Assembly (NCBI GenBank): GCA_002269645.1
Contig: NIVC01002543.1
Coordinates: 1 to 64,000 of the forward strand
Source of the DNA: Macrostomum lignano
Lineage: Eukaryota
Length of the DNA stretch: 64,000 bases
Direction of reading: 5' to 3'
The number at the start of each line of letters is the position of its first letter. The stretch's first letter is position 1. Shown here one piece after another: positions 8,205-42,262 of the stretch. The notes below the pieces were generated by a model that saw nothing but the letters and a program-made list of their open reading frames with translations, was not told the DNA's origin and did no database searches. The translations under genes and the position numbers were made by a program.

Positions 8205-8236
<32 letters not shown>

Positions 8237-8284: not shown

Positions 8285-11200
8285 ATGGCGCAGCTCTTGG
8301 CGCTGTGCGCTCTGTGTGCAGCTCTTTGTGCTCTTGGAGGCGGTGAGTTGTCTGTCTACCCTCAATGCCAGATATATTGTAAGCCTTCATCACTCATGTG
8401 AAGCCCCTGCTCTCTTACAGCGGCGAGCTCCATCAAATTCAACATCACGACAACAAACATCGCGGCTTCCTGGCAGTCGTCGGAATTCGGCAACAGGTGC
8501 TTCAGAGACACGGCTGTGCTTGAGCAGTGGGATTACTTTCACACAACGGACACCCCAGACTCTCATGGATGCCAGTGGCTGCTCATTAAGCTGTTCCGTG
8601 CAATCCGTGTGCAATCAGTCACTGTCTATGGCAGGGCAGCAGGTGAGTTGTCTTGTCCACTTCTGTCTCTTCCGCTTCACTTCTTTCTTACTTCTCTTCT
8701 CACTGCAGTGCCCAGCAGAGCACAGAACATCGAGATTCTGCTGAGTGACAGACTGCCATCGGGTCTGAATGCGAGTGGCGATAGTTGCTATGGGACTCTG
8801 TCCGGTAGCTTGAGCTCGCTCACTCAGTGCGGAGTCACCCAGAGTGAGCAGACTCAGACTCACAAGGTGGCATGCAGCTACTCTGGCTGCCCGAATGTGG
8901 GTTCATCTACTCTTTTGTTGCTGAGTGCAAACAGGCGCAAATAGGTGCAAATGGGTGCAAATAAGGTGCAAATAAGGTGCAAATAGGTGCAAATAGGTGC
9001 AAATAAGGTGCAAATTGGTGGCTAAAACTCACGAAATTTCAGCTGACTGAGTACATCTTGCTAAGGAAGAACGTTCGAAACGAGACTTATAAATACTTAA
9101 AGTATATTAACTTTCAAGCTCTGGAAGTCGAAGAAGGTACGACTTTAGTTAAATAAGCTCAATTATGTCTTCATGGGGCATTTTGACTCTAAACAAACTT
9201 TCTCTCTTTCAGCATCTCAGAATGCGCAGATTTATAGGTGTGAAGTGTCTGGCGGACGCCTCAGTAACTGCAGACTCAATGCTTTGCAAACTTTGAAAAA
9301 TGGCGACAGAGCTTGTATGAAAGTCTGCCCACCGTGTCAGCTTCCGACAACTGATGCAGCATCTTGTCACATTGCTGCTCCAAGTGGCAGAATCACACAG
9401 CTGAGAGTTGTGAGCTCACGGATGAATTTATTTCTTTTAAAATGATTTTCACAGACTATTCGACTAAATAATAGGAATAAGTGGAATGACCAATTATGAA
9501 TGGTAAAAAAATCGTGTTTTTATTCGATTTTAGCCAGTTCCTTAAATTTCTTTCACCATTTTCAGAATGGGAACCCAGACTTCTTTTTAATTGTAATTTT
9601 CATACCGACTGCGGAAAGTCAAGGAGGAAACTTCACGTGTAACTTTAACTGCTCGAACGAGTTGCCTCAGTCAGCAACTGAACCAATCGGTTTCTTTGGT
9701 ATGCAGCTTTTGTGTGTACTTTTTACCTTAGACAGGTGAATTCAAATGAAACTTATAGATTTGTAGAGCAACCTTGTACTATTCAAACTGTTTTAATCTG
9801 GGGTATTGGTATTTTGCTAGCAGCCTAGCAGCAAGGACTACTCAAGTACATAAATATAGGACGCAACACTCGAAATCTACGGTAAATGTTTTAAAGGCAA
9901 CTTTTCGCCGAAAAATATACAGAGATAGAAGGTTTTAATCTTATGAGAAAAACGTTTAAAATAATGACAAGACCAATTTAACATGCATATTAAATAAATG
10001 CGTTGTTAGAGCAGCATGTGAGACACAAAATAGTGTGATTAGGACTTTTTTTGACACTGTTAAGAGACCTAAATACTGTTTTAGTGTTGAAAATCGTGAA
10101 ACTTCCTATCTCCGTAGTGTATTTTTCCGATGAAACCTGCCTTTAAAACTATTTCTGAACAAAAAACTGCAGTACAAATTTTTTTTGTACTGCAGTACAA
10201 ATGACACCCTAGCAGCAGGTGCAGTACAAATGACAGCCTAGCAGCAGGTGCAGTACAAATGACACCCTAGCAGCAGGTGCAGTACAAATGACACCCTAGC
10301 AGCAGGTGCAGTACAAATGACACCCTAGCAGCAGGTGCAGTACAAATGACACCCTAGCAGCAGGTGCAGTACAAATGACACCCTAGCAGCAGGTTCAGTG
10401 CCAATGGCTAAGCTAATTTTCTGTTGCAGAAGAGAAGCCCAGAAGTGTCAGCATTGAGCCCAGCAACAGGGTCCAGATTGGATCAAGGATATTTCTGGCT
10501 CCAGGCATGGAGTTTCACTTCAGCTTCATCACAGAAGCTGCGTACCCAAGTCCCATCCATGCTTGCAGGCTGGTGAGAACTTCTGAGCGGGAAACTAAAG
10601 AAGATACTTCAGGTGTTCAACTGCATCCATTCACAGAGGTGAGAAAATTCTGTGCAATCTTACTACTTTCATTTCCCATTCTGATATTCTCTCATCAAAT
10701 GCTTTTTCAGAGATCCCTCACTGACGCATCATCGAACAAAAGCCATGCAATTACCAAGATCTCAGAGTACAGACTCAACATTAGCGCACACATGCAAGCA
10801 GCTGGGCAAAAGATACAGTGCGTATCGACTGTCGGTGAAAGCAGTGGAAAAGTGGGGAAATCAATTTCGCTGCCTGAGCTTGTAGGTAAGCAAACTATAG
10901 AAGGCGAACACTGGCAGGTGTGATACCTGGAATTTCTCACCTAATTCACCTGTCTAATTAGATGAGGATGAGTTGAATTGAAACGATAAAAATTACAGTA
11001 CAAAGCAAGCCAGAGTTTCTGCTACCGCCAATCACGGATTGGAAAGACGGCCACTCCGTCTCAGTTGCTGTCGACTCAACAACAGACAGCTCTGTTTCAA
11101 CCAGCCACCGCTGCTTGCTGGAGACTCGAGACGGCAACAGAAGTCTCAACCTTACTCAAGTGAGTCTCGCTTTGGTTTCGTGTCGTTGTGATGTCGGTTT

Positions 11201-14200
11201 CCAAAACTTAAGACTGTTGCATAAGATTGAGTGCAAACGTCAGATGAAATTCCTAAGTATGGATTCCTTCTCTTCCATACATGTCCATACACAGGACTTA
11301 CTTATTCTAGCACGGTAGACTTCTCAAAACGAAATTCCAGGGTACAAATCAACTCAGCACATTCAAAATGAATGTTGATAGACACTGGGGCAGCCCAGCA
11401 TCTCTGGTCTGTTTGGTAAATCAGTCTGGGCTGATCCAGACATGGACTCGCCATCGGCTACCGAAGGTGCTCTGTGAGTCTCTGATGCCATGACTTTCTT
11501 CACAAGCCCATTACTGCATTTGAAGATTAAATCACGATTGCATTTTCGAATTCAGACAAGGCCGAAGGGCTGGCCATCCGTATTTCGTCTGGAGACCTGG
11601 TGAGTGATGAAGAAGCCAGCTTCTCAGTGACTGCATCTGACTCAGGATACCCAGCGGCTCTGCACCAGTGCAGAATCGAGAGCAAGAGCCTCGGAGAAGA
11701 CAAGGTATGAGGCTGATGTTATTGCTCATTCTGAGTTCCCAACCAGCATTTCAATGCTGCAATTTCGGTTGACCATTCCGCAGACTGCAGAGTCAGACGG
11801 CTCAAGTCACTGGAGATTCACGCCTCAGCGAGGGCACAACGGTGAAAGAATCAGATGCGATGTGGTGCAGAAACTGAGTGGCTCTTTGATATTCAGTCAG
11901 ACTGTAAACAGCTCTAAGCTGGAGGTTAAATGTGAGTCTCATGCTTTAATCTGCTGCATGTTGTGTTCCTGATCGATACAGTACGGCTGCTTGCACTTCA
12001 GACAGGGCAATCGTCACGTGGCCCAGCAAAATCGCTCCGAAAAAGGAAGGCGAGGCTCTGTCATTCGTTGTGCTCGCAGACGGCAACCCAGAGCCCAGCA
12101 GTCAGTGCTGGCTGCAGCTGGTATCTGGCGCACAGGTGAGTCTTTGATTTGGGATGATGCTGCTTTCTGGCGCACAGGTGAGTCTTTGATTTGGGATGAT
12201 GCTGGTATCTGGCTCACAGGTGAGTCTTTGATTTGGGATGATGCTGCTTTCTGGCGCACAGGTGAGTCTTTGATTTGGGATGATGCTGCTTTCTGGCGCA
12301 CAGGTGAGTCTTTGATTTGGGATGATGCTGGTTTCTGGCTCACAGGTGAGTCTTTGATTTGGGATGATGCTGCTTTCTGGCGCACAGGTGAGTCTTTGAT
12401 TTGGGATGATGCTGCTTTCTGGCTCACAGGTGAGTCTTTGATTTGGGAGTGATGCTGGTTTCTGGCTCACAGGTGAGTCTTTGATTTGGGATGATGCTGC
12501 TTTCTGGCGCACAGGTGAGTCTTTGATTTGGGAGTGATGCTGGTTTCTGGCTCACAGGTGAGTCTTTGATTTTGGAGTGATGTTGGTTTCTGGCTTACAG
12601 GTGAGTCTTCGATTTGGGAGTGATGCTGGTTTCTGGCTCACAGGTGAGTCTTTGATTTGGGAGTGATGCTGGTTTCTGGCTCACAGGTGAGTCTTTGATT
12701 TGGTAGTTATGCTGGTTTCTGGCTCACAGGTGAGTCTTTGATTTGGGAGTTATGCTGGTTTCTGGCTCACAGGTGAGTCTTTGATTTGGTAGTTATGCTG
12801 GTTTCTGGCTCACAGGTGAGTCTTTGATTTGGGAGTTATGCTGGTTTCTGGCTCACAGGTGAGTCTTTGATTTGGGAGTGATGCTGGTTTCTGGCTCACA
12901 GGTGAGTCTTTGATTTGGTAGTTATGCTGGTTTCTGGCTCACAGGTGAGTCTTTGATTTGGGAGTTATGCTGGTTTCTGGCTCACAGGTGAGTCTTTGAT
13001 TTGGTAGTTATGCTGGTTTCTGGCTCACAGGTGAGTCTTTGATTTGGGAGTTATGCTGGTTTCTGGCTCACAGGTGAGTCTTTGATTTGGGAGTGATGCT
13101 GGTTTCTGGCTCACAGGTGAGTCTTTGATTTGGTAGTTATGCTGGTTTCTGGCTCACAGGTGAGTCTTTGATTTGGGAGTGATGCTGGTTTCTGGCTCAC
13201 AGGTGAGTCTTTGATTTGGGAGTGATGCTGGTTTCTGGCTCACAGGTGAGTCTTTGATTTGGGATGATGTTGCAGTCTCGGTGTTTCATAATTAATCGCT
13301 ATTTTCGTTCCAGGTAGACCTGCATAAGCTGAAGCATTCCATTTTTGAGAGCACCTTCAACGTCACTGTTGATAGGTCAATGAACAGAGCCAACTTGAGC
13401 TGTGTTTTGACTCAACCTGGACTTCCATCTTCAACAGAGCAGAGCTTCACCCAATTGATCACAGTTTTTTGTAAGTTTACAGTATCCATTTTCATAGGGT
13501 TCATAAAGAGGTCCAGTTCAGCATCTCCTACTCTGATGTGGGAAACCCGTCCGCCAAGCACTTCTGCCGCATCGGCTCTCGGCCACTCACCGATCCTGAG
13601 GTGCGAAAATACTGACCAACATTTTGTGCCCGCTTTATGTAAGTAACAAGGTAATTAGAGGTTGTAATGGAAAACATCTGAAAATACATTTCAGTCGGTT
13701 TCGGCATCACAAATATTGTTGCGTTGGAAGTTCAAGGCTCAAGTCGGAGACAACGGTCAGAAGATTGTCTGCCAGGTGGTACAAAATGATCGACATGGCG
13801 GCCTCGTCTTTAAGCAAACAGTTGCCTGCCAGACTCTGGATGTGCTCTGTAAAGATTTTGTTTATCAGTTGTATTTATTGCTTCAATCGAGCTATTTATA
13901 TTTATTCCAATATATTGAACCACTTTGACTGTCACAACATTGTTTTCTTAATCTCTATCTTTTCAGACCCAGTCAGCTACTCAGGATTTCTATCCCAGCC
14001 ACCGTCGGTGACGGAGGGCGATCTTTTGGTTATTTCTTTCTTTTCAACTGGAGGAAACCCCGAGCCTCGTCACCGATGCTGGTTGCAGACACCTGAAGGT
14101 CGAATGGACGCAGTCGCTCTAACAGAGGCGAGGACAGATGTGGACCTCGTGACGAACTTCAGTGTGACTTCCGTAAAGCAGATGAATGGAGGATCTGTGG

Positions 14201-15391
14201 TTTGCCGCGTCTCTCAGATGGGCCTCGAGGACCTGGACAAGGAGTTCTCCCAGAACATTACTGTTTTCTGTGAGTTCTCTGTCGCGACTGCTCCAACTTT
14301 TATCAATATAAAATCTAATAGAGGCTTGCAGTGCGTTAGTTTTTTGTTTGCAGTCCGATCGAAGGTGGATCTGACTGGCTCAAGGATTTCAGGATCCATT
14401 GTGCTCGTCAGCGTCAATGTGACGGATGGAAACCCGACACCGCTGGTGAACTGCTCGCTGCTCTCAAGCTCTGGAACTCGATATGTGAGTTCTCAGTGTG
14501 CACAGTTGCTCCACTTCTATTTGCATTGAGTAGCTTTAATGCAGCTGAGCCGGTCTTTTTAGGAGCTGTCCAGGAAGGACTCGGCAATGCTAAGAGTCGG
14601 ACTGCATGAGATAAAAGTCGATCTGCTTCCAAGAGAGCAGCCTCAGTCAGCCAACGTCACCTGTTCTGTGAAGCAAGACTATGCGGGTTTCAAAAGCAGC
14701 AGCCTTGTCTTTTTGGCACTCAAAGCTGACGAGAGTTTTCAAGCTAGCGACCAAGAAAGTGAGCAGTTCTGTGTAGTCCAGCTTAGCTGCATTACTAAAC
14801 TATTGTCTTTTAAGTTAATCGTATTGTAATGTCTTATCATATTGCTACTATTGTATTATCGCTACAAAAACTGATCGATCAGACCATGGGAGCCTCAGCT
14901 GGAATCAAATGTTCCAAATTCTCTGTCTGTGCGCAGTGGTTGCCGTCGCTATCTTTCTTTCTCTGCCTGCCACAGTCTACGTCTGGAGGCGAACTGCATC
15001 GCCTCCGTTAGGAATTCAGTGGCAGCACAGAGCAGCCACAGACGGGAGACCAGCTGACGTACCTCTGGTCCCTCTGACTGCTGCTGAGCGAGATCCCAAT
15101 GTAATATTGCTTTTCAGTATTGCTTGCTCATTTTGCTGTTTAATCTGTGAGTGAGGCTGACAATCTGCGGCACTTTTCAGACCGTCTACTACTATGAGGA
15201 GAACCCGGCGCTTCCGGATCGGCCTCCGAGCGTTGAGGAGACGGACTCAAATGTAAGTCTATTGTCTGCATCTTTGCCAGATGCTCCCAGTGCATGCTCA
15301 CTGCAGGATTCAGTTCCGCTCATTGCAGATGGTGCACTGTTCTGAGGAGGAGCAGACGGCTCAGGGAGCCATCGAATTCTACGTGCAGTGA
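8285..15391 (+). CDS. Lectin-like/Ig-repeat membrane receptor copy A (internally deleted; shorter receptor or pseudogene)
   Basis: ATG 8285 MAQLLALCALCAALCALGG signal peptide (exon 8285-8342). Exon 8421-8642 and the exon from 8709 give YFHT..WLLIKL..VQSVTVYGRAAVPSRAQNIEI. Ig exons follow; TM exon 14883-15100 (ILCLCAVVAVAIFLSLPATVYVW); tail exons 15181-15252 and 15329-15391 ending EFYVQ*. Lacks 1118 bp present in B. Confidence 0.8.
8930..9018. repeat. 10-bp intronic tandem repeat (AGGTGCAAAT)n, copy A
   Basis: About 9 units directly visible in intron 3. Confidence 0.9.
9833..10165. mobile_element. MITE-like insertion in a copy A intron
   Basis: Absent from the same intron of B and C; imperfect inverted arms at ~9889-9932 and ~10103-10150; related sequence at ~16630-16715 and ~29945-29990. 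Confidence 0.5.
10200..10395. repeat. 29-bp intronic minisatellite, copy A
   Basis: About 7 units of AGCAGCAGGTGCAGTACAAATGACACCCT just upstream of the acceptor of the EEKPRS exon. Confidence 0.9.
12117..13270 (+). repeat. 42/43-bp minisatellite built from an exon-intron junction, copy A
   Basis: About 27 units of GCTGGTTTCTGGCTCACAG|GTGAGTCTTTGATTTGGGA(G)TGAT. Confidence 0.95.
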
Positions 15392-19073: not shown

Positions 19074-22000
19074 ATGGCGCAGCTCTTGGCGCTGTGCGCT
19101 CTGTGTGCAGCTCTTTGTGCTCTTGGAGGCGGTGAGTTGTCTGTCTGCCTTCAATGTCAGATATATTGTAAGCCTTCATCACTCATGTGAAAGCCCCTGC
19201 TCTCCTACAGAGGCAAACTCCATCAAGTTCAACATCACGACAACAAACATCGCGGCTTCCTGGCAGTCGTCAGAATACTTCAACAGGTGCTTCGGAGACA
19301 CGGCTGTGCTTGAGCAGTGGGATTACTTTCACACAACAGGCACCCCAGACTCTCATGGAAACCAGTGGCTGCTCATTAAGCTGTCCCGTGCAATCCGTGT
19401 GCAATCAGTCACTGTCTATGGCAGGGCAGCAGGTGAGTTGTCTTGTTCACACTTCTGTCTCTTCCGCTTCACTTCTTTCTTACTTCTCTTCTCACTGCAG
19501 AGCCCAGCAGAGCACAGAACATCGAGATTCTGCTGAGTGACAGACTGCCACCGGGTCTGAATGCGAGCAATGGCAGTTGCTATGGGACTCTGTCCGATAG
19601 CTTGAGCTCGCTCACTCAGTGTGGAGTCACCCAGAGTGAGCAGACTCAGACTCACAAGGTGGCCTGCAGCTACTTTGGCTGCCCGAATGTAGGTTCATAT
19701 ACTCTGTTGTTTCTGAGTGCAAATAGGTGCAAATAGGTGCAAATAGGTGCAAATAGGTGCAAATAGGTGCAAATAGGTGCGATTAGGAGGTGCAAAGAGG
19801 TGCGATAAGAAGGTGCAAATAGGTGAAAATAGGTGCAAATAGGTGGAAATGGAAGGTGCAAATAGGTGCAAATAGGTGCAAATAGGTGCAAATAGGTGCA
19901 GGTGCAAATAGGTGCGATTAAAGGTGCAAATAGGTGCAAATAGGTGCAAATAGGTGAAAATAAATGCAAATAGGTGCAAAAAGGAGGTGCAAATAGGTGC
20001 AAATGGGTGCAAATAGGTGCAAATAGGTGCAAATAGGTGCAAATAGGTGCAAATAGGTGCAAATAGGTGCAAATAGGTGCAAATAGGTGCAAATAGGCGC
20101 AAATAGGTGCAAATAGGTGCAAATAGGTGCGATTAGGAGGTGCAAATAGGTGCGATTAGAAGGTGCAAATAGGTGCGATTAGAAGGTGCAAATAGGTGCG
20201 ATTAGGAGGTGCAAATAGGTGCAAATAGGTGCAAATAGCTGCAAATAAATGGGTAAATCACACGAAATTTCAGGTGACTGAGTACATCTTGCTAAGGAAG
20301 AACGTTCGAAACGAATCTGATAAGCATATGAACTTTCAAGCTCTGGAAGTCGAAGAAGGTACGACTTTAGTTGAATAAGCTTAATTAAGTCTTCATGGGA
20401 CATTTTTTACTCTAAACAGACTTTCTCTCTTTCAGCATCTCAGAATGCGCAGATTTATAGGTGTGAAGTGTCTGGCGGACACCTCAGTAACTGCAGACTC
20501 AATGCTTTGCAAACTTTGAAAAATGGCGACAGAGCTTATATGAAAGTCTGCCCATCATGTCAGCTTCCGACAACTGATGCAGCATCTTGTCACATTGCTG
20601 CTCCAAGTGGCAATATCACACAGCTGAGAGTTGTGAGCTCACGGATGAATTTATTTCTTTTAAAATGATTTTCACGGACTATTCGACTAACTAATAGGAA
20701 TAAGTGAAATGAGAAATTATGAATGTTAAAACTTTATTTTTTATACGATTGTAGCCAGTTTCTTAATGTTCTTTCACCATTTTCAGCATGGGCACCCAGA
20801 CTCCAATTTAATTGTAATTTTCACATCGACTGCGGAAAGTCAAGGAGGAAACTTCACGTGCAGCTTTAATTGCTTGAGCGAGTTGCCTCAGTCAGCAACT
20901 GAACCAATCGGTTTCTTTGGTATGCAGCTTCTGTGTGTACTTTTTACCTTAGACAGGTGAATTCAAATGAAACTTATAGATTTGTAGAGCAACCTGGTAC
21001 TGTTCAAACTGTTGTAATCTAGGATATTGGTATTTTGCTAGCAGCCTAGCATTAGATCCAGTACAAATGGCAGCCTAGCAGCAGGTGCAGTACAAATGGC
21101 AGCCTAGCAGCAGGTGCAGTACAAATGGCAGCCTAGCAGCAGGTGCAGTACAAATGGCTGAGCTCATTTTCTGTTGCAGAGGAGAAGCCCAGAAGTGTCA
21201 GCATTGAGCCCAGCAACACGGTCCAGTTTGGATCAAGGATATTTCTGGCTTCAGGCATGGAGTTTCACTTCAGCTTCATCACAGAAGCTGCGTACCCAAG
21301 TCCCATCCATGCTTGCAGGCTCGTGAGAACTGCTGAATATTCAACTACAGAAGATACTTCAGGTGTTCCACTGTATCCCTTCACAGAGGTGAGAACATCC
21401 TGTGCAATCTTAATACTTTCATTCATCATTCTGATATTCTCTCATCAAATGATTTTTCAGAGATCTCTCACTGACGCATCATCGAACAAAAGCCATGTAA
21501 TTACCAAGATCTCTGAGTACAGACTCAACATTGGCGCACACAATGCAGTTGAGAAAAAAATACAGTGCGTGTCAGCTGTCGGTGAAAGCAGTGAAAAATC
21601 GGTGAAATCAATTTCGCTGCCTGAGCTAATAGGTAAGCAACAATATATTTGCGCCTTTTGGGAGAGTACTGGCAGGTATGATACCTGGAATTTCTCATAT
21701 TAGATGAAGTTGAGCTGTATTGAAACGATAAAAACTGCAGTTCCAAGCAAGCCGGAGTTTCTGCTACCGCCAATCACGGATTGGAAAGACGGCCACTCCG
21801 TCTCAGTTGCTGTCGACTCAACAACAGACAGCCCTGTTCCAACCAGCCACCGCTGCTTGCTGGAGACTCGAGACGGCAACAGAAGTCTCAACGCTACTCA
21901 AGTGAGTCTTGCTTTGGTTTTATGCCGTCGTGATGTTGGTTTAGAAAGCAAAAACTTGGGAAAAATAGTGAATGCTTTTTATCAAATGTCAAATATTTGA

Positions 22001-25000
22001 CAAACGTCATGGGCTGCTAAAGTTCATTCGGTGTTCTAAGCATGAGCATGTTTACTTTCTTTGAATAAATACGAAGTTTCTAAATTGCTACAAATTTCGA
22101 TTTGTTCTCTTAAAACATTTCCTGTAGTAACTCTGAATCAGTCCATGAGTGTGTGTACAGGACTATCCTTCTCGCATGGTAGAGACTTCTCAAATCGAAA
22201 TTCCAGGTAACAAATAAAAGCAGTAAATTCGAGTTGGATGTTGATAGACACTGGGGAAACGCAGCCTCTCTGGTCTGTTTGGTAAATCAATCTGGGCTGA
22301 TCCAGACATGGACTCGACATCGGCTACCGAAGGTGCTCTGTGAGTCTCTGATGCCAAGACTTTCCTCACAAGCCTATTTCTGCATTTGAAGATTAAATCA
22401 CGATTGCATTTTCGAATTCAGACAAGGCCGAAGGGCTGGCCATCCGTATTTTGTCAGGAGACCTGGTGAGTGATGAAGAAGCCAGAATCTCAGTGACTGC
22501 ATCTGACTCAGGATACCCAACGGCTCTGCACCAGTGCAGAATCGAGAGCAAGAGCCTCGGAGAAGACAAGGTATGAGGCTGATGCAATTGCTCATTCAGA
22601 GTTCCCAACCAGCATTTCAATGCTACAATTTCGGTTGACCATTCCGCAGACTGCAGAGTCAGACGGCTCAAGTCACTGGAGATTCACGCCTCAGCGAGGG
22701 CACAACGGTGAAAGAATCAGATGCGATGTGGTGCAGAAACTGAGTGGCTCTTTGATATTCAGTCAGACTGTCAACAGCTCTAAGCTGGAGGTTAAATGTG
22801 AGGCTCATGCTTTAATCTGCTGCATGCTGTGATCCCAATCGATGCAGTAGGGCTGCTTGCACTTCAGACAGGGCAATCGTCACGTGGCCCAGCAAAATCG
22901 CTCCGAAAAAGGAAGGAGAGGCTCTGTCATTCGTTGTGCTCGCAGACGGCAACCCAGAGCCCAGCAGTCAGTGCTGGCTGCAGCTGGTATCTGGCTCACA
23001 GGTGAGTCTTTGATTTGGGATGATGCTGGTTTCTGGCTCACAGGTGAGTCTTTGATTTGGGAGTGATGCTGGTTTCTGGCTCACAGGTGAGTCTTTGATT
23101 TGGGAGTGATGCTGGTTTCTGGCGCACAGGTGAGTCTTTGATTTGGGATGATGCTGGTTTCTGGCGCACAGGTGAGTATTTGATTTGGGATGATGCTGCT
23201 TTCTGGCGCACAGGTGAGTATTTGATTTGGGAGTGATGCTGGTTTCTGGCTCACAGGTGAGTCTTTGATTTGGGAGTGATGCTGCTTTCTGGCGCACAGG
23301 TGAGTCTTTGATTTGGGATGATGCTGGTTTCTGGCGCACAGGTGAGTATTTGATTTGGGATGATGCTGCTTTCTGGCGCACAGGTGAGTATTTGATTTGG
23401 GAGTGATGCTGGTTTCTGGCTCACAGGTGAGTCTTTATTTGGGAGTGATGAGTGATGCTGGTTTCTGGCTCACAGGTGAGTCTTTTATTTAGGAGTGATG
23501 CTGGTTTCTGGCGCACAGGTGAGTCTTTGATTTGGGAGTGATGCTGGTTTCTGGCTCACAGGTGAGTCTTTGATTTGGGAGTGATGCTGGTTTCTGGCTC
23601 ACAGGTGAGTCTTTGATTTGGGAGTGATGCTGGTTTCTGCCTCACAGGTGAGTCTTTGATTTGGGAGTGATGCTGGTTTCTGGCTCACAGGTGAGTCTTT
23701 GATTTGGGAGTGATGCTGGTTTCTGCCTCACAGGTGAGTCTTTGATTTGGGAGTGATGCTGGTTTCTGGCTCACAGGTGAGTCTTTGATTTAGGATGATG
23801 TTGCAGTCTTGGTGTTTCATAATAATCGCTATTCTCGTTCCAGGTAGACCTGCATAAGCTGAAGCATTCCATGTTTGAGAGCACCTTCAATGTCACTGTT
23901 GATAGGTCAATGAACCGAGCCAACTTGAGCTGTGTTTTGACTCAACTTGGACTTCCATCTTCAACGAAGCAGAGCTTCACCCAATTGATCACAGTATTTT
24001 GTAAGTTTACAGAATCCATTTTCATAAGGTTCATAAAGAGGTATACAATTTGTAAATGAGTGCGTATCATTTGAGCCAATGGAGACATTTCCTGTCGCTT
24101 AGGAGGCTCTGACTTGAAGCACTTCTTAACTCGTAGACTGAAAAATAATATCGACCCAACCATCCTACAGATCAGCCTCAGCCTCCACTCACCATCGACT
24201 TGGCTCAGACTGTCTACGAAGGCACCGACGTCACCTTCAGGGTGCGGTCGGGCGCTGGAAACCCCAATGTCACCCACAGATGCCACGTGTACAACGGAGA
24301 AATTGTGAGCGCAATATTTGCCCATCCATTCACCTGACTTGCAGCCTTGATTTAGCATAGAGCTGATCATTCCAGGAAGTTCAAAACAGCATGAAAATCG
24401 AATCGGAGTACTTGACAATGGTGAACTATGCACCCAACAGTCATGACACATTTGTGAGCTGCACGGCCGAGCAGATGCACCGCTCTGATGTTGTGTTCAC
24501 CAGCAGCATCAGAAGGAACATCACCGTAAATTGTGAGAAGTCAAATGCCATTTTATTAGCATGCAGCCTGCCATTTACTTGAAAACCGGAGTATCCACTT
24601 TAACTTCAGACTTTGCGCACAACTCCATGGACGTCAGTCCGACAGACGGAGTTCTTGCTGGAGATCGAGTCGAAGTGACACTCAGATCTTATGGTGGCCG
24701 GCCTGCCGTCACTCAGCATGAGTGTTCGCTTGGAGGCTCTGAGCTGACTATGGAAAACGTATGCTTTTTTCATCACCTGAGTGCTTTTGAGTTGACTGTA
24801 AACCTTCTTCAGGCATCTAAAATGATCAATTTGAGAATTTTTCTACAGGTAACAAGGCGTCCCACCGAAGTGAAGTTCACGTTCCGTGCATCGAAAGAGC
24901 ATGACGGCAAGGTGCTCGCCTGCAAATTCGTACAGGATGAGCGACTGATTGAGTGGAAGAGAGAGAAACTCAGCGTCTTCTGTAAGTACAGTTTGAGTTG

Positions 25001-29080: not shown

Positions 29081-29084
<4 letters not shown>

Positions 29085-29119
<35 letters not shown>

Positions 29120-32957: not shown

Positions 32958-35900
32958 ATGGCGCAGCTCTTGGCGCTGTGCGCTCTGTGTGCAGCTCTTT
33001 GTGCTCTTGGAGGCGGTGAGTTGTCTGTCTACCCTCATTATCAGATATATTGTAAGCCTTTATCACTCATGTGAAGCCCCTGCTCTCTTACAGCGGCGAG
33101 CTTCAACAACTTCAACATCACGACAGAAAACGTCGCGGCTTCCTGGCAGTCGTCGGAATACAACAACAGGTGCTTCAGAGACACGGCTGTTCTTGAGCAG
33201 TGGGATTACTTTCACACAACGGACACCCCAGACTCTCATGGATGCCAGTGGCTGCTCATTAAGCTGCCCCGTGCAATCCGTGTGCAATCAGTCACTGTCT
33301 ATGGCAGGGCAGCAGGTGAGTTGTCTTGTCCACTTCTGTCTCTTCCGCTTCACTTCTTTCTTACTTCTCTTCTCACTGCAGAGCCCAGCAGAGCAGAGAA
33401 CATCGAGATTCTGCTGAGTGACAGACTGCCATCGGGTCTGAATGCGAGCAGCGATAGTTGCTATGGCACTCTGTCCGGTAGCTTGAGCTCGCTCACTCAG
33501 TGCGGAGTCACCCAGCGTGAGCAGACTCAGACTCACAAGGTGGCCTGCAGCTACTCTGGCTGCCCGAATGTGGGTTTATCTCCATTTACTCTGTTGTTTC
33601 TGAGTGCAAATAGGTGCAAATAGGTGCCATTAGGAGGTACAAATAGGTGCGATTAGGAGGTGCAAATAGGTGCAATTAGGAGGTGCAAATAGGTGCAATT
33701 AGGTGCCAATAGGTGCAAATAGGCGCAAATAGGTGCAAATAGGCGCAAATAGGTGCAAACAGGTGCAAATAGGTACAAATAGGTGCAAATAGGTGCGATT
33801 AGGAGGTGCGAATAGGTACAAATAGGTGAGATTAGAAGGTGCAAATAGGTGCGATTCGGAGGTGCAAATAGGTGCAAACTGGTGCAAATTGGTTCAAATA
33901 GTTGCAAATAGGTGCAAAAAGGTGCAAATAGGTGCAAATAGGTGCAAAAAGGTGCAAATAGGTGCAAATTGGTGCAAATAGGTGCAAATAGGTGCAAATA
34001 GCTGCAAATAGCTGCAAATGGCTAAATCACACGAAATTTCAGGTGACTGAGTACATCTTGCTAAGGAAGAACGTTCGAAACGAATCTGATAAGTACATGA
34101 ACTTTCAAGCTCTGGAAGTCGAAGAAGGTACGACTTGAGTTAACTAAGCTTAATTAAGTCATCATGGGACATTGTTGATTTGAAACAAACTTTCTCTCTT
34201 TCAGCATCTCAGAATGCGCAGATTTATAGGTGTGAAGTGTCTGGCAGACACCTCAGTAACTGCAGACTCAATGCTTTGCAAACTTTGAAAAATGGCGACA
34301 GAGTTTATATGAAAGTCTGCCCACCGTGTCAGCTTCCGACAACTGATGCAGCATCTTGTCACATTGCTGCTCCAAGTGGCAATATCACACAGCTGAGAGT
34401 TGTGAGCTCACGGATGAATTTATTTCTTTTTAAATGATTTTCACAGACTATTCGACTAACTAGTAGGAATAAGTGGAATGAGCAATTATGAATGTTAACA
34501 CTTTATTTTTTATACGATTGTAGCCAGTTTCTTAAAGTTCTTTCACCATTTTCAGAATGGGCACCCAGACTCCAATTTAATTGTAATTTTCACATCGACT
34601 GCGGAAAGTCAAGGAGGAAACTTCACGTGCAGCTTTGATTGCTTGAGCGAGTTGCCTCAGTCAGCAACTGAACCAATCGGTTTCTTTGGTATGCAGCTTT
34701 TGTGTGTACTTTTTACCTTAGACAGGTGAATTCGTAAAGCAACCTTCTACTGTTCAAACTGTTGTAATCTAGGATATTGGTATTTTGCTAGCAGCCTACT
34801 ATCAGGTGCAGTACAACTGACACCCTAAAAGCAGGTGCAGTACAAATGACACCCTAGCAGCAGGTGCAGTGCAAATGACACCCTAGCAGCAGGTGCAGTG
34901 CAAATGACACCCTAGCAGCAGGTGCAGTACAAATGACAGCCTAGCAGCAGGTGCAGTACAAATGGCACCCTAGCAGCAGGTGCAGTGCAAATGACACCCT
35001 TAGCAGCAGGTGCAGTACAAATGGTACCCTAGCAGCAGGTGCAGTACAAATGACAGCCTAGCAGCAGGTGCAGTACAAATGACACCCTAGCAGCAGGTGC
35101 AGTACAAATGGCTGCCTAGCAGCAGGTGCAGTACAAATGGCACCCTAGCAGCAGGTGCAGTACAAATGACAGCCTAGCAGCAGGTGCAGTACAAATGGCA
35201 GCCTAGCAGCAGGTGCAGTACAAATGATACCCTAGCAGCAGGTGCAGTGCAAATGAAACCCTAGCAGCAGGTGCAGTACAAATGACAGCCTAGCAGCAGG
35301 TGCAGTACAAATGGCACCCTAGCAGCAGGTGCAGTGCAAATGACACCCTTAGCAGCAGGTGCAGTACAAATGGTACCCTAGCAGCAGGTGCAGTACAAAT
35401 GACAGCCTAGCAGCAGGTGCAGTACAAATGACACCCTAGCAGCAGGTGCAGTACAAATGGCTGCCTAGCAGCAGGTGCAGTACAAATGGCACCCTAGCAG
35501 CAGGTGCAGTACAAATGACAGCCTAGCAGCAGGTGCAGTACAAATGACAGCCTAGCAGCAGGTGCAGTACAAATGACACCCTAGCAGCAGGTGCAGTACA
35601 AATGACAGCCTAGCAGCAGGTGCAGTACAAATGGCAGCCTAGCAGCAGGTGCAGTACAAATGATACCCTAGCAGCAGGTGGGTCATTCCACGAGAGGCTC
35701 CCATCATGTTTTTTGAACTTTGAGCACTTGTAACTTTCGAGCCATAATAGATAAACAAAGCTGCAAACAGCAATCTGTGTCAAACTTCTAGTTCTATCTT
35801 TTTCACATAGCTCCTTATGAATTCTAAAACAACTGAACACATAGCAGAGCGTCAACCGTCAGCATAGTTTATGCTCTGCTATGTGTTCAGTTGTTTTCCA

Positions 35901-38900
35901 GGTGCAGTGCAAACGGCTGAGCTCATTTTCTGTTGCAGAGGAGAAGCCCAGAAGTGTCAGCATTGAGCCCAGCAACAGGGTCCAGATTGGATCAAGAATT
36001 TTTCTGGCTTCAGGCATGGAGTTCCACTTCAGCTTCATCACAGAAGCTGCGTACCCAAGTCCCATCCATGCTTGTAGGCTGGTGAGAACTGCTGAGCAGG
36101 AAACTACAGAAGATACTTCAGGTGTTCTACTGCATCCCTTTACAGAGGTGAGAACATCCTGTGCAATCTTAATACTTTCATTTCCCATTCTGATATTCTC
36201 TCATCAAATGCTTTTTCAGAGATCCCTCACTGGCGCCTCAGCCAACAAAAGCCATGTAATTACCAAGATCTCACAGTACAGACTCAGCATTAGCGCACAC
36301 ATGCAAGCAGCTGGGCAAAAGATACAGTGCGTGTCGGCTGTCGGTGAAAGCAGTGAAAAAACGGTGAAATCAATTTCGCTGCCTGAGCTTGTAGGTAAGC
36401 AAAAATATTGGAGGGCGAATACTGGAAGGTGATACCTGGAATTTCTCATATTAGATGAAGATAAGTTGTATTGAAATGATAAAAACTGCAGTTCCAAGCA
36501 AGCCGGAGTTTCTGCTACCGCCAATCACGGATTGGAAAGACGGCCACCCCGTCTTAGTTGCTGTCGACTCAACAACAGACAGCCCTGTTCCAACCAGCCA
36601 CCGCTGCTTGCTGGAGACTCGAGACGGCAACAGAAGTCTCAACGCTACTCAAGTGAGTCTTGCTTTGGTTTCATGCCGTCGTAATGTCGGTTTAAATTAA
36701 TAATTAATAATTTTAATCTAACATAAAAATATTTCCTTCATGCGCCTGAAAAAAGCATTTAGCGTTCTGAGCATGAGTAGGCTTTGTTTCTGATTGAAAT
36801 TTTAAAACTATTCTGAAGCTCAGAATGGACACCGTGCTCATAAAAAATATGAAATTTTTCATAAAAAATATGAAATTGCTACAAATTTCGGTTCGTTCTC
36901 TTCCATACATGTCCATACACAGGGCTTACGTATTCTCGCATGGTAGAGACTTCTCAAATCGAAATTCCAGGTAACAAATAAAAGCTGTAAATTTGAGTTG
37001 GATGTTGATAGGCACTGGGGAAACGCAGCCTCTCTGGTCTGTTTGGTAAATCAATCTGGGCTGATCCAGACATGGACTCGAGATCGGCTACCGAAGGTGC
37101 TCTGTGAGTCTCTGATGCCATGACTTTCTTCACAAGCCTATTACTGCATTTGAAGATTAAGTCACAATTGCATTTTCGAATTCAGACAAGGCCGAAGGGC
37201 TGGCCATCCGTATTTTGTCAGGAGACCTGGTGAGTGATGAAGAAGCCAGCTTCTCAGTGACTGCATCTGACTCAGGATACCCAGCGGCTCTGCACCAGTG
37301 CAGAATCGAGAGCAAGAGCCTCGGAGAAGACAAGGTATGAGGCTGATGTTATTGCTCATTCAGAGTTCCCAACCAGCAGTTCAATGCTACAATTTCGGTT
37401 GACCATTCCGCAGACTGCAGAATCAGACGGCTCAAGTCACTGGAGATTCACGCCTCAGCGAGGGCACAACGGTGAAAGAATCAGATGCGATGTGGTGCAG
37501 AAACTGAGTGGCTCTCTGATATTCAGTCAGACTGTCAACAGCTCTAATCTGGAGGTTAAATGTGAGGCTCATGCTTTATTATGCTGCATGCTGTGATCCC
37601 GATCGATACAGTAGGGCTGCTTGCACTTCAGACAGGGCAATCGTCACGTGGCCCAGCAATATCGCACCGAAAAAGGAAGGAGAGGCTCTGTCATTTGTTG
37701 TGCTCGCAGACGGAAACCCAGAGCCCAGCAGTCAGTGCTGGCTGCAGCTGGTTTCTGGCTCACAGGTGAGTCTTTGATTTGGGTGTGATGCTGGTTTCTG
37801 GCTCACAGGTGAGTCTTTGATTTGGGATGATGCTGGTTTCTGGCTCACAGGTGAGTCTTTGATTTGGGAGTGATGCTGGTTTCTGGCTCACAGGTGAGTC
37901 TTTGATTTGGGAGTGATGCTGGTTTCTGGCTCACAGGTGAGTCTTTGATTTGGGAGTGATGCTGGTTTCTGGCTCACAGGTGAGTCTTTGATTTGGGATG
38001 ATGCTGGTTTCTGGCTCACAGGTGAGTCTTTGATTTGGGATGATGCTGGTTTCTGGCTCACAGGTGAGTCTTTGATTTGGGAGTGATGCTGGTTTCTGGC
38101 TCACAGGTGAGTCTTTGATTTGGGAGTGATGCTGGTTTCTGACGCACAGGTGAGTCTTTGATTTAGGATGATGCTGGTCTCTGGCTCACAGGTGAGTCTT
38201 TGATTTGGGATGATGCTGGTTTCTGGCTCACAGGTGAGTCTTTGATTTGGGATGATGCTGGTTTCTGGCTCACAGGTGAGTCTTTGATTTGGGATGATGC
38301 TGGTTTCTGGCTCACAGGTGAGTCTTTGATTTAGGAATATTTTGCAGTCTCGGTGTTTCATAATAATCACTATTCTCGTTCCAGGTACACCTGCATAAGC
38401 TGAAGCATTCCATTTTTGAGAGCACCTTCAACGTCACTGTTGATAGGTCAATGAACCGAGCCAATTTTAGCTGTGTTTTGACTCAACCTGGACTTCCATC
38501 TTTAACGGAGCAGAGCTTCACCCAATTGATCACAGTTTTTTGTAAGTTTACAGAATCCATTTTCATCGGTTTCCTAAAGACGTATAAAATTGTAAATGAG
38601 TGCGTATCATTTGAGCCAATGGAAACATTTCCTGTCGCTTCGGAGGCTCTGACTTGAAGCACTTCTTAAATCATAGACTGAAAAATAATATTGACCCAAC
38701 CATCTCACAGATCAGCCTCAGCCTCCACTCACCATCGACTTGGCTCAGACTGTCTACGAAGGCACCGACGTCACCTTCACGGTGCGGTCGGGCGCTGGAA
38801 ACCCCAGCGTCACCCACAGGTGCCACGTGTACAACGGAAAAATTGTGAGCGCAATATTTGCTCATCAAATCACCTGAATTGCAGCTTTGATTTAACACAG

Positions 38901-41900
38901 AGTTGATCATTTCAGGAAGTTCAAAACAGCATGAAAATCGAATCGGAGTACTTGACAATGGTGAACTATGCACCCAACAGTCACGACAAATTTGTGAGCT
39001 GCACGGCTGAGCAGATGCACCGCTCTGAAGTTGTGTTCACCAGCAGCATCAGAAGGAACATCACCGTCAATTGTGAGAAGTCAAATGCCATTTTATTAGT
39101 ATGCAGCCTGCCATTTACTTGAAAACCGGATATCCACTTTAACTTCAGACTTTGCGCACAACTCCATGGACATCAGTCCGACAGACGGAGTTCTTGCTGG
39201 AGATCGAGTCGAAGGGACACTCAGATCTTATGGTGGCCGGCCTGCCGTCACGCGGCATGAGTGTTCGCTTGGCGGCCCTGAGCTGACTATGGAAAACGTA
39301 TGCTTTTTTATCACCTGAGTGCTTTTGAATTGACTGTAAGCCTTCTTCAGGCATCCTAAATGATCAATTTGGGAATTTTTCTACAGGTAAGAAGCCGTCC
39401 CACCGAAGTGAAGTTCACGTTTCGTGCATCGAAAGAGCACGACGGCAAGGTGCTCGCCTGCAAATTCGTTCAGGATGAGCGACTGATTGAGTGGAAGAGA
39501 GACAAACTCAGCGTCTTCTGTAAGTACAGTTTGAGTTGTTTATTGGTGTGAAAGTATGCGGGTACATTCTACTTTGAAAAGGAACTCGTTAAGCCACACT
39601 GATGTAAATGTGCACTGCTTTTTCGCACCTGTAGACAAAGCGGATTTCGACTCTGAGGTGCAAACCTTAAATAGAAAAGTCAGATGGAACACGACAGTCC
39701 AGTTCAGCATCTACTACTCTGATGTGGGAAACCCGTCCGCCAAGCACTTCTGCCGCATCGGCTCTCGGCCACTCACCGATCCTGAGGTGCGAAAATACTG
39801 ACCCACATTTTTGTCTGCTTTATGTAAGGGACTGGGTAGTTGATATTGTAATGGGAAACATCTGGTCAAAATACATTTCAGTCAGTTTCAACATTACAAT
39901 CGCTTTGGAAGTTCAAGGCTCAAGTCGGAGACAACGGTCAGAAGATCGTCTGCCAGGTGGTGCAAAATGATCAGCATGGCGGCCGAGTCTTTAACCAAAC
40001 AGTTGCCAGCCAGACTCTGGATGTGCTCTGTAAAGATTTTGTTTATCAGTTGTATTTATTGCTTCAATCGAGCTATTTATATTTATTCCAATATATTGAA
40101 CCACTTTGACTGTCACAACATTGTTTTCTTGATCTCTCTATCTTTTCAGACCCAGTCAGCTACTCAGGATTTCTATCCCAGCCACCGTCGGTGACGGAGG
40201 GCGATCCCTTGGTTATAACTTTCTTATCAACATCAGGAAACCCCGAGCCTCGTCACCGATGCTGGTTGCAGACACCTGCAGGTCGGATGGACGCAGTCAA
40301 TCTAACAGAGGCGAGGACAGGTGTGGACCTCTCGACGAACTTCAGTGTGACTTCTGTAAAGCAGATGAATGGAGGATCTGTGGTTTGCTGCGTCCGTCAG
40401 AAGGGCCTTGAGGACCTGGACAATGAGTTCTCCCAGAACATTACTGTTTTCTGTGAGTTCTCTGTCGCGACTGCTGCAACTTTTATATCAATACAAAATC
40501 TATTAAAAAACGTTCGTTTTTCCGTTCCAGTCCGATCGGAGGTGGATCTGACCGGCTCAAAGATTTCAGGATCCACAGTGCTCGTCAGCATCAATGTGAC
40601 GGACGGAAACCCGACACCGCTGGTGAACTGCTCGCTGCTCTCGAGCTCTGAAACTCGATATGTGGGTTCTCACTGTGCACAGTTGCTCCACTTCTATTTG
40701 CATTGAGTAGCTTTAATGCAGCAGAACCGGTCATTTTAGGAGGTGTCCAGGAAGGACTCGACAATGCTGAAAGTCGGACTCAATGAGATAGAAGTCGATC
40801 TGCTTTCAAGAGACCAGCGTCAGTCAGCCAACGTCACCTGTTCTGTGAAGCAAGACTATGCGGGTTTCAGTAACAGCAGCCTTGTCTTCTTGGCGCTCAA
40901 ATCTGACGAGAGTTTTCAAGCTAGCGACCAAGAAAGTGAGCCGATCTCAGCTGCTCGTATTGTTTTTTTCAACTAGCATGACTTTTTCTGATATTAAAAT
41001 GTTTAAGTGCATTATTTCACCGATTTCTCGTATTAAATAGTGCGTTGTCTCACACCGCCAAAAGCAGGAGGGTCGGTAGGCGGCGCTGTCGGCGCCACAT
41101 TCGGAACGCTGTTGGCCGTGGGACTGGTCGGGGCCGCAATCCTGCTGCTGCTGAGAGCTCGGCGACTCAGGGCAACTGAAGGGCCCGACAATCGCAGCGG
41201 CTACTCCAACGGTAGAAGAGGAGCCAGTGGAGCTGCTCGAACGGAACGAGAAAAGCAACAGCCTAGAAAAAAGCAGACCGAAGATCCCACAGAGACTGAG
41301 CTGCAGTTCATGGACAAGCACTATCTGTATCCGGTGAGATGAGCATCATTGGACTTTTAATTAACAGATTCCTGATCCAACTTGGAACAATTTGTGTCTT
41401 TGAGCAAGACACTTAACTCTGCATTGCTTCAGTTCACCCAGCTGTAAAATGGGTGCCAGCATTAGCTGGGGTAATTGAGGGTGTATGGCGACCCAGAGTT
41501 CTTGGGCTGAACAGCCGTACGCAGCCTTCAGATGCGCCGCGCAATAGCTCGGCGCAATAGGTTGCACGTCTGGCCCCCTGGGTTAGGTGTAATAAATTAT
41601 TATTATTATTATACATCTGAAGCATCTCCCTAGCAATATCTGCAGCCTCTCTTTAGCAACATCTGCAGCATCTCCCCAGCAACATCTGCAGCCTCTCTCT
41701 AGCAACATCTGCAGCATCTCCCTAGAAGCATCTGCAGCATCTGCAGCATCTTCTCAGCAACATCTGCAGCATCTCCCTAGCAATATCTGCAGCCTCTCTC
41801 TAGCAACATCTGCAGCATCTGCCTAGAAGCATCTGCAGCATCTGCAGCATCTTCTCAGAAACATCTGCAGCCTCTCCCTAGCAACATCTGCAGCATCTCC

Positions 41901-42262
41901 CTAGCAGCATCTCCAGCATCTCCCTAGCAAAATGTGCAGCATTTCCGTAGCAACATCTGTAGCATCTCCTTAGCAACATCTGCAGCATCTCCCTAGCAAC
42001 ATCTGTAGCATCTCCCTAGCGAAATCTGCAACGTACCTATTAGCTGTAACCAATACCTACAGTATTCTAAAATTTGATTCCATTGCAGAAGCCCCGCATG
42101 GAGTACGCTACGGTTGTCAAGGGCAAACTAATGGAAGAGACCAGCCTAGCCGACAGCACAGAGACAATCTACCTGACCATCGTGGGCTGCACACAGCCTG
42201 AGGATGACAAGGCGCCCACAATGCAGAAATCTAAGGTCAACTTAGAGAAAATTGAAAAGTGA
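32958..42262 (+). CDS. Lectin-like/10xIg membrane receptor copy C with a distinct TM and ITIM-like/ITSM tail
   Basis: Ectodomain exons closely match A/B up to the donor at ~40936. TM exon 41041-41333 (GAVGATFGTLLAVGLVGAAILLLL-RARR, phase 1 to 0) and exon 42089-42262 (KPRMEYATVV..ETIYLTIV..) splice in frame. Confidence 0.85.
33605..34020. repeat. 10-bp intronic tandem repeat (AGGTGCAAAT)n, copy C
   Basis: About 40 degenerate units. Confidence 0.95.
34803..35680. repeat. 29-bp intronic minisatellite, copy C
   Basis: About 30 units. Confidence 0.95.
37748..38340 (+). repeat. 42/43-bp splice-donor minisatellite, copy C
   Basis: About 14 units. Confidence 0.95.
41385..41612 (+). mobile_element. 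SINE (same family as 4272-4545), 5'-truncated, in the tail intron of copy C
   Basis: TTGAGCAAGACACTTAACTC..CTGTAAAATGGG CORE-like segment, shared body GCAGCCTTCAGATGCGCCGCGCAATAGCT, (ATT)n tail. Confidence 0.75.
41630..42030. repeat. ~23-bp intronic tandem repeat
   Basis: Degenerate (AGCAACATCTGCAGCATCTCCCT)n. Confidence 0.9.

Follow-up and report, generated by a model that had tools for sequence, protein, structure and literature searches.

Introduction

Paired receptors of the immunoglobulin superfamily (IgSF) are known from vertebrates, where the KIR, LILR/PirB, SIRP, and CD33-related Siglec families comprise clustered, recently duplicated genes with related immunoglobulin (Ig) ectodomains and divergent transmembrane (TM) segments and cytoplasmic tails, shaped by duplication, gene conversion, and exon shuffling. 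In these families, one type of tail carries a membrane-distal pair resembling the immunoreceptor tyrosine-based inhibitory motif (ITIM) or switch motif (ITSM), and the activating members combine a short tail with a charged TM residue and an immunoreceptor tyrosine-based activation motif (ITAM) or an adaptor. To our knowledge, the innate recognition receptors of flatworms are almost unknown, and the flatworm Macrostomum lignano is a tractable model with RNA interference, transgenesis, and regeneration. Here, we analyzed a 64,000-nucleotide stretch of M. lignano DNA (contig NIVC01002543.1, positions 1 to 64,000; hereafter, the window), in which three tandem genes, A, B, and C, encode predicted type I IgSF surface receptors with a lectin-like tip, and in which gene C bears a TM segment and tail unrelated to those of A and B. 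The genomic anatomy of this family is solid; that one and the same recognition feeds two outputs, through an ITIM-like/ITSM tail in one gene and an SH2/SH3-adaptor tail in the others, is what we infer from it.

All of the above features of the vertebrate paired receptors recur in M. lignano (the membrane-distal pair as an ITIM-like motif and an ITSM in the predicted tail of gene C), except those of the activating members, since the A/B tail is long and has neither a charged TM residue nor an ITAM. In addition, the structural model of the annotated paralogue P0002 (P numbers are our own handles) is similar to multi-Ig ectodomains, LILRB3 and MAG among them. However, there is no sequence homology past the generic C2-set fold, and the M. 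lignano family differs in its ten Ig domains and its ligand tip, which is not a V-set domain; a Siglec begins with a V-set domain bearing the sialic-acid-binding arginine, whereas the tip here resembles the jelly roll of the F-type lectin domain (FTLD). The Alr family of Hydractinia is likewise a clustered, lineage-restricted invertebrate IgSF family with non-canonical Ig features and exon shuffling, and some of its tails carry motifs that resemble an ITIM or ITAM (Huene et al. 2022, doi 10.1101/2022.03.04.482883). The two are not homologous. Alr proteins have a V-set domain followed by I-set domains and no lectin-like tip; moreover, Alr is highly polymorphic and its role in allorecognition has been demonstrated. 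Macrostomum does not form colonies. Single Ig domains of the M. lignano family, which Pfam places in C2-set_2, find their best sequence matches in the IRM/nephrin-Kirre and nectin-type adhesion proteins (SYG-2, Rst, nectin-4), but the family is not orthologous to these; its Ig domains miss the B-strand cysteine, it has no FN3 domain, and its tip is a different domain. The tip is similar in sequence profile and, in a model of moderate confidence, in fold to the F-type lectins (eel agglutinin AAA, 1K12; striped bass FBP32, 3CQO; bacterial fucolectin modules), whose published motifs are HX24RXDX4(R/K) for fucose and hhDGx for Ca2+ (PMC5712786); the M. lignano tip has neither in its strict form, and the position of its histidine is uncertain.

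Three tandem receptor genes

Comparison of the window with itself by blastn revealed three tandem copies on the plus strand, with homologous extents of about 8160-15490 (A), 18958-27139 (B), and 32836-40947 (C). Their DNA identity is 88-95% with introns counted and 93.3-93.8% over the positions aligned three ways. The three tandem genes described in an earlier note on this DNA, made from its letters alone, were therefore found again, and the ectodomains that it had called near-identical proved closely alike, but with an amino acid identity of only 88-91%. The limits that it had given, 8285 and 42262, coincide with the ATG of A and the stop codon of C. A search with a rough concatenation of the coding fragments of A retrieved M. 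lignano proteins exclusively, and UniProt A0A1I8IZW3 (P0001) matched exons 1-13 of copy A residue for residue. This match fixes M. lignano as the source and means that the joins of these exons have been annotated independently and are validated.

Gene A (8285..15391, plus strand) begins with its ATG at 8285 and was modelled from the joins of A0A1I8IZW3, splice sites, and model tests. Gene C (32958..42262, plus strand) ends with its stop codon at 42262 and follows an exon model with GT-AG at all joins, and gene B (19074..27040, plus strand) was projected from C and translated; the full models combined the annotated joins of A with direct reading of the 3' half. B has 26 exons encoding 1337 aa in an intact open reading frame (ORF), with a single stop at its end and GT-AG in all introns, and C has 25 exons encoding 1372 aa in an uninterrupted ORF. 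Both proteins consist of a signal peptide, a non-Ig N-terminal domain of ~165 aa (B exons 2-4, 19211-20358; C exons 2-4, 33094..34127; equivalent in A, 8421-9136), ten Ig-like domains, D1 to D10 (B, 20436-26430; C, 34205-40935), one TM helix, and a tail. In the shared exon plan, a signal-peptide exon is followed by three exons for the N-terminal domain, two exons for each Ig domain except D9, and the TM and tail exons; introns are in phase 1 between domains and in phase 0 inside them, with GT-AG at the annotated joins of A. Hydropathy analysis found exactly two hydrophobic segments per protein, namely the signal peptide and the TM segment near the C-terminus, and the C ectodomain contains 24 N-glycosylation sequons. 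The models of B and C are supported by the locus of the distant paralogue P0010 (transcript-based NCBI model Mlig_3_7, locus L001), which shares their exon logic. The proposed layout of a lectin-like domain with ten Ig domains consequently holds for the intact ORFs of B and C but fails for A, which has seven Ig domains at most.

The earlier note had itself raised the concern that A, B, and C might be haplotypes or assembly chimeras. The genome of M. lignano is recently duplicated and repeat-rich, and its early assemblies were fragmented; together with the presence of extra copies in the proteome that are 83-93% identical, this would accommodate uncollapsed haplotypes or homeologues stitched together in tandem. 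Against such stitching, the sequence is contiguous, without a single N in the window, and there are three copies rather than two, which diverge by ~6-7% with many indels. The spacers are unequal in length and content, one of them carrying a retroelement remnant; A has an internal deletion, C has a different 3' end, and in the public assembly the fusion model P0004 spans the A tail, the spacer, and B. Because there are no Ns and the copies differ in indels, minisatellite number, spacer length, domain deletion, and 3' end, an assembly artefact is unlikely to be their source, and we give stitched haplotypes or homeologues very little credence.

Exchange of the transmembrane segment and tail

Copies A and B share one type of TM segment and tail, encoded by three exons that were identified in A by sequence reading and tblastn at 14883-15100 (TM FQILCLCAVVAVAIFLSLPATVYVW), 15181-15252 (TVYYYEENPALPDRPP...), and 15329-15391 (...EFYVQ, stop); their equivalents in B lie at 26526-26749, 26830-26901, and 26978-27040, all on the plus strand. 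This tail of ~80 aa contains TVYYYEEN, the class-II SH3 ligand PALPDR, and a C-terminal EFYVQ. In gene C, the stretch that blastn aligns with A and B stops at about 40947 (corresponding ends: A, 14770; B, 26442), 12 nt beyond the donor of exon 23 and inside intron 23 (40936..41040, plus strand), and tblastn detected no A/B-type tail sequence 3' of C and no C-type tail sequence elsewhere in the window. Because homology stops ~12 nt beyond exon 23, we conclude that the TM and tail module was exchanged by an event within the intron before the TM exon.

The replacement module in C comprises exon 24 (41041..41333, plus strand), which encodes the C-type TM segment (GGSVGGAVGATFGTLLAVGLVGAAILLLL), the stop-transfer sequence RARRLR, GYSNG, and a terminal ...ELQFMDKHYLYP, and exon 25 (42089..42262, plus strand), which reads KPRMEYATVV...ETIYLTIVG... 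before the stop. Both exons had been proposed from the sequence beforehand, and both are bounded by canonical AG/GT sites in the right phase, the phase-1 acceptor of exon 24 fitting the phase-1 donor of exon 23. The codon-usage log-odds per codon are +0.63 for exon 24 and, for exon 25, +0.66 in frame vs -0.09 off frame, and an AATAAA lies 219 nt 3' of the stop codon. The join of exon 23 to exon 24 is a prediction; read-through of intron 23 would instead give ...SDQESEPISAARIVFFN, then a stop. In its last part (ELQFMDKHYLYP), exon 24 is similar to the tail of the paralogue P0011 (ELEQDFMRSHYLY; BLASTP E=4e-4), whose model stops at the same exon boundary, exon 24 of C being one residue (Pro) longer. 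The C-type tail probably came from the P0011 locus.

A third type of TM segment and tail belongs to a partial upstream paralogue, U (1..2681, plus strand; tblastx vs copy A and tblastn with P0036), which is cut short by the 5' edge of the window and consists of Ig-like exons, a short tail, and the TM segment GLLGLGLGLLAAAFAIGLAIGTY. Its close M. lignano relative P0036 is 84-97% identical to U in the best-matching exon alignments and ~40% identical in the TM and tail region. The U tail contains no tyrosine and so no tyrosine motif of any type. Our comparison of the tails thus agrees with the earlier description of one type in A and B, an unrelated one in C, and a third in the upstream paralogue.

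With the ITIM defined as [ILVS]xYxx[ILV] and the ITSM as TxYxx[VI], the C tail holds GYSNG, MEYATV, and the strict ITSM TIYLTI, with 22 residues separating the tyrosines of the latter two; a pair spaced in this way has P ~0.004 in composition-preserving shuffles. In the tail of P0010, a strict ITIM and ITSM form a similar pair, VVYAQV and, 27 residues on, TEYTEI (P ~0.007 in shuffles). The C and P0010 tails have no significant sequence similarity and share their motif logic alone.

Our preferred explanation, to which we assign about an even chance, is that the cluster belongs to a lineage-restricted multigene family of M. lignano type I IgSF surface receptors whose tails have been exchanged and whose signalling outputs differ. 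The sequence shows that the cluster evolves through tandem duplication, gene conversion or unequal exchange, domain loss in A, and exchange of the TM and tail module via an intronic breakpoint, the outcome being 91%-identical ectodomains on two unrelated tails in B and C. The tip of the ectodomain would bind a ligand, which may be a glycan, in a context that may be immunity, cell-cell adhesion, or reproduction. The C tail would be tyrosine-phosphorylated and would recruit tandem-SH2 or SAP-like effectors, with an inhibitory or modulatory output like that of vertebrate ITIM/ITSM receptors, and the A/B tail, through YYYEEN and PALPDR, would couple the same recognition to a different output by way of SH2/SH3 adaptors; U, with the third type of tail, has no tyrosine motif there. 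The 34-kb stretch that holds the three genes displays how an IgSF repertoire diversifies: genes are duplicated in tandem, converted by one another, stripped of domains, and given other tails by exchange within an intron.

A predicted F-type-lectin-like tip on a C2-set stalk

A profile of the tip built from the Macrostomum family only was compared with the PDB and matched FBP32 of striped bass (3CQO) at E=3.7e-7 and 1K12 at E=0.49. Adding the canonical FTLD P0027 lowered these values to 3.7e-19 and 2e-5, respectively, which are partly circular, and the profile was rebuilt without P0027 to remove this circularity. The Pfam family F5_F8_type_C matched the spliced C tip weakly (E=0.023). The AlphaFold2 (AF2) model of the tip is of moderate confidence (predicted local distance difference test [pLDDT], 65-86), and Foldseek aligned it with jelly rolls of the galactose-binding-domain-like fold, with SUN2 at the top (1.4e-4) and CBM32 also among the matches; the F-type lectins 1K12, 3LEI, 3CQO, and 2J1R were matched by this moderate-confidence model at 8e-4 to 1.5e-3, with target-normalised template modelling scores of 0.29 for 3CQO, 0.48 for 1K12, 0.51 for 3LEI, and 0.52 for 2J1R. 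Both arginines of the basic triad align in the tip (GRAAEPSR), and WQSS... and QWLL.KL are the counterparts of FTLD core motifs. By profile and model, the tip is a predicted divergent F-type-lectin-like jelly roll with the galactose-binding-domain fold; the FBP32 match and the modelled jelly roll bear out the lectin-like character ascribed to it before. Among the architectures given in reviews of F-type lectins (CTLD, HTLD, pentraxin, CCP, TM, and FA58C; PMC5712786 among them), the combination FTLD-Ig-TM does not appear.

In the raw, unspliced ORF fragments, Pfam gave sub-threshold Ig matches only, and splicing was therefore needed before domains could be called; on the whole spliced C protein, C2-set_2 scored 36.9 bits vs a cut-off of 21, with Ig_3 sub-threshold. 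For the exhaustive and structure searches, the annotated paralogues P0002 and P0009 were the queries that stood in for the spliced proteins. D2-D5 of the AF2 model of P0002 are all-beta with a pLDDT of 80-90, and Foldseek matched this stalk in the PDB with titin I65-70 at 3e-15, followed by CEA, ICAM-1/5, MAG, LILRB3, and nectin-3 (titin, CEA, ICAM, MAG, and LILRB3 spanning E values of 1e-15 to 1e-10). The best matches of the family Ig-domain profile were the C2-set domains of SYG-2, nectin-4, ICAM-1, CD22, and Siglec-5. Two cysteines are invariant across 14 domains, one after a G.P.P motif and one in the F strand. In the profile alignment to SYG-2 and nectin-4, the first of these occupies the canonical position of the C-strand tryptophan and the B strand has no cysteine, so that the canonical B-F disulfide packing on the C-strand tryptophan was not seen in the family Ig domains, as judged from sequence alignment and not from coordinates. 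This pattern suggests a C-F disulfide, such as that present in CD4 domain 2. The stalk is accordingly read from alignment and model as C2-set IgSF with a shifted cysteine, and the Ig stalk claimed earlier stands on the C2-set_2 score and the AF2/Foldseek fold. The B-strand cysteine is missing from all Ig-like domains of C D2-D10 (35939-40935) and of the relatives, and D1 is atypical in having seven cysteines.

An exhaustive phmmer search with P0002 against 1.84 billion representatives returned 24 matches at E<=1e-3, and all those below E=1e-8 were from M. lignano, which points to a lineage-restricted family. One-to-one orthology with nephrin, Kirre, hemicentin, or a Siglec would predict a different outcome. 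Single domains do resemble C2-set domains from SYG-2, Rst, CD22, and Siglec-5, but weakly (E 1.7e-5 to 0.09), and the architecture of an FTLD-like tip, ten Ig domains, and no FN3 differs from those proteins; at the sensitivity of HMMER, we rejected nephrin/Kirre orthology on the phmmer result and the missing FN3 domain, and the chance that any of these proteins is a 1:1 orthologue seems to us negligible. The earlier note had named such orthology as a threat to its reading, and only M. lignano relatives emerged below E=1e-8. Its description of the system as undescribed likewise stands, since our literature search found no paper describing the family, Mlig012130, or Mlig034318.

Constraint, exchange among copies, and the state of copy A

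Between B and C, exons are 95.0% and short introns 89.6% identical, and the ectodomain dN/dS is 0.54 (tip, 0.73; D1, 1.40; D10, 1.27; all three values rest on few changes, and that of D1, with six substitutions in all, is barely informative). Because the exons are more conserved than the introns and dN/dS is ~0.54, B and C appear to be under some constraint; the overall and per-domain dN/dS provided no evidence of strong positive selection. Informative sites favour different pairings of A, B, and C in different segments, and this change of the pairing signal along the genes indicates gene conversion or unequal exchange among the copies. Further loci encode the annotated M. lignano proteins P0002, P0003, P0005-7, P0008, and P0009, in each of which segments resembling A, B, and C are combined as a mosaic.

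Copy A has lost ~1.1 kb, a deletion that the earlier note had overlooked. Relative to B and C, blastn placed the junction of this deletion at ~13511 (equivalent to B 25159 and C 39697), and D6, D7, and the 5' part of the first exon of D8 have disappeared with it. Exons 1-14 of A run from 8285-8342 to 13314-13470 and are followed by 13967-14269, 14354-14484, 14563-14758, and the three TM and tail exons. The deletion scar (13471..13848, plus strand; blastn, three-frame comparison with C, and frame tests) retains two pieces of D8, namely a remnant of its first-half exon (13498-13600), for which no acceptor is in frame, and its second-half exon (13695-13848), now an orphan. Only when both are skipped does A stay in frame (1046 aa, seven Ig domains); use of the obvious acceptor at 13498 causes a frameshift and a stop at ~aa 820. 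We looked for an in-frame acceptor that could rescue the remnant exon and found none plausible, the sole in-frame AG implying a 5-nt intron. Copy A may thus be a shortened isoform or a pseudogene.

Weighing of the alternatives

Several observations weigh against our preferred explanation of receptors with differing signalling outputs. In the motif scan, the A/B tail showed no ITIM, ITSM, or ITAM and its TM segment no charged residue, and the C tail showed no strict ITIM and no ITAM. MEYATV has Met at -2 and is ITIM-like rather than strict, the motif definition having been widened after the sequence was seen, and a single strict motif in the C tail is unremarkable (P=0.15 in shuffles). No protein or transcript that joins D10 to a C-type tail was found in databases by a search with D10b plus the tail or by a C/P0011 tail profile, the latter a weak negative in that it did not retrieve even P0011; in the annotated paralogues in which a D10-tail junction was found, the tail was of the A/B type in every case (P0005-P0007). 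The dN/dS of 0.54, with values above 1 in D1 and D10, also fits relaxed constraint. The transcript-based NCBI annotation contains no protein of the close A/B/C subfamily, the expression of which is putative. As to the tip, a regular expression for strict HX24RXDX4(R/K) had no match in A, B, C, or any relative (the only variant of the fucose motif present is the relaxed pattern H-x(20-32)-R-x(5,6)-R), and hhDGx had no match in any N-terminal domain of the family. In the profile alignment, a conserved Asp occupies the canonical His position and the His does not align clearly. Because the strict fucose and Ca2+ motifs are absent and Asp stands at the His position, sugar binding by the tip may have been lost or changed, and glycan binding is to be taken only as a possibility.

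These observations also bear on whether the pairing functions at all. C could be a chimeric relic of exchange with a P0011-like neighbour, A could be a pseudogene, or both, with the motifs of C fortuitous and only some copies, such as B, expressed. This would agree with a copy A that is frame-broken unless two exons are skipped, a C tail that occurs in no database protein, a MEYATV that is no strict ITIM, a dN/dS of ~0.5-0.65, and public locus models that are fragmentary or fused, suggesting little transcript support. Nevertheless, C retains a 1372-codon ORF in 25 exons with all splice sites intact, B and C are more conserved in exons than in introns, and the tail exons of C have coding-like codon usage in the correct phase and a polyadenylation signal 3' of the stop. 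We regard non-functional pairing as improbable.

A more serious rival is an adhesion or reproductive role, in which a lineage-specific adhesion or gamete/mating recognition family would use the tip and Ig stalk for cell-cell or sperm-egg contact, and the differences among tails would be by-products of unequal crossing-over that serve trafficking or cytoskeletal anchoring. In Macrostomum, reproductive genes typically turn over fast as copies are duplicated, deleted, and converted, and the Macrostomum-restricted family discussed here turns over rapidly in the same three ways. Its best Ig-domain matches are C2-set domains of the adhesion type (SYG-2/nephrin-like, nectin-4, ICAM-1), the A/B and U tails have no immunoreceptor motifs, and Yxx-hydrophobic motifs double as endocytic signals. 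The F-type lectin repeats of the oyster, moreover, function in fertilisation (PMC5712786), which also favours such a role. What speaks against it is that pairs of the ITIM/ITSM type, each rare by chance, stand near the C-terminus of two unrelated tails, and that FN3 domains, a PDZ ligand, and other classical features of adhesion tails are missing. On balance, we consider an adhesion or mating role rather unlikely.

Our preferred explanation, a family with exchanged tails and differing outputs, has a narrower form, namely an independently evolved flatworm paired-receptor system in which a glycan-recognising ectodomain has received alternative tails, one of them inhibitory, through intronic exon exchange. 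This narrower form is doubtful. The Siglec-like logic put forward in the earlier note is reflected in the lectin-like tip, the Ig stalk, and the ITIM-like/ITSM tail of C, but the tip is not a V-set domain and the strict sugar motifs are absent. Similarly, its inhibitory tail is matched in C by the ITSM and ITIM-like pair (P ~0.004), but not by a strict ITIM in MEYATV, and its activating partner was not borne out, as the A/B tail of ~80 aa has neither an ITAM nor a charged TM residue. If the narrower form is true, the cluster would represent the first paired-receptor system in Platyhelminthes, with a non-Ig lectin tip and convergent with the logic of Siglec, KIR, and LILR. Recruitment of SH2 phosphatases by the C- and P0010-type tails would extend ITIM/ITSM-style inhibition combined with lectin-like recognition to Platyhelminthes; if no such recruitment takes place, the genes would represent a fast-evolving, lineage-specific adhesion family.

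Public gene models, repeats, and the remainder of the window

The models presented here allow correction of the public gene models for this locus, which are either wrong or truncated. UniProt A0A1I8J1C7 (P0004; 15181-27037) is a mis-predicted fusion of the A tail, the spacer, and a mis-spliced B. P0002 and P0003, from other loci, end at '...AHQIT', where the GT donor in the first exon of D6 was missed and read-through leads to a stop. P0001 stops at the minisatellite array of intron 13, which has a 42-43-bp unit and occupies 12117-13269 in A (27 copies), 22983-23800 in B (19 copies), and 37747-38336 in C (14 copies); the unit (…GGCTCACAG|GTGAGTCTT…) copies the last codons of exon 13 and its 5' splice site, such that each unit holds a potential donor. 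A variable-length (TGC)n microsatellite lies just 5' of each ATG (8141-8284, 18951-19073, and 32830-32957) and is rendered as poly-Cys in the public models, and the homology among A, B, and C begins only ~125 nt 5' of the start codon.

Other introns are also rich in repeats. The length of intron 6 (731, 260, and 1250 nt in A, B, and C) follows the copy number of a 29-bp minisatellite (A, 10191-10406, 7 copies; B, 21041-21158, 4 copies; C, 34803-35680, 30 copies), and in B (19717-20247) and C (33604-34019) intron 3 is taken up by a 10-bp repeat (GTGCAAATAG). Intron 24 of C holds a 23/46-bp tandem array at 41613-42030 and, at 41386-41575, one copy of an interspersed repeat of ~200 bp, whose other copy is inverted, 79% identical, and located in the spacer 5' of A (4290-4485). 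The spacers among the copies are unequal in length and one carries a retroelement: a remnant lies on the minus strand of the B-C spacer (29168-31698), with none in the A-B spacer, and its ORF fragments match zf-RVT weakly and include the reverse-transcriptase motif YVDD and a segment, 'YIGQTDRHLYTRIEEH', that is GIY-YIG-like (Penelope-like).

Downstream of C, ORF fragments on the minus strand at 46993-48194 match the P-element transposase HTH (PF12017, 21.3 bits) and THAP (PF05485, 23.4 bits) families near the Pfam threshold and probably belong to a THAP9-like transposase that has decayed or been domesticated. Satellite DNA makes up the downstream third of the window. A 48-53-bp satellite array of ~30 copies occupies 50973-52463, two (AGAC)n microsatellites of ~52 copies lie at 53260-53468 and 60654-60864, and an 88-bp repeat at 54880-59130 and 61720-64000 is organized in higher-order units of ~670-760 bp that are 94-97% identical.

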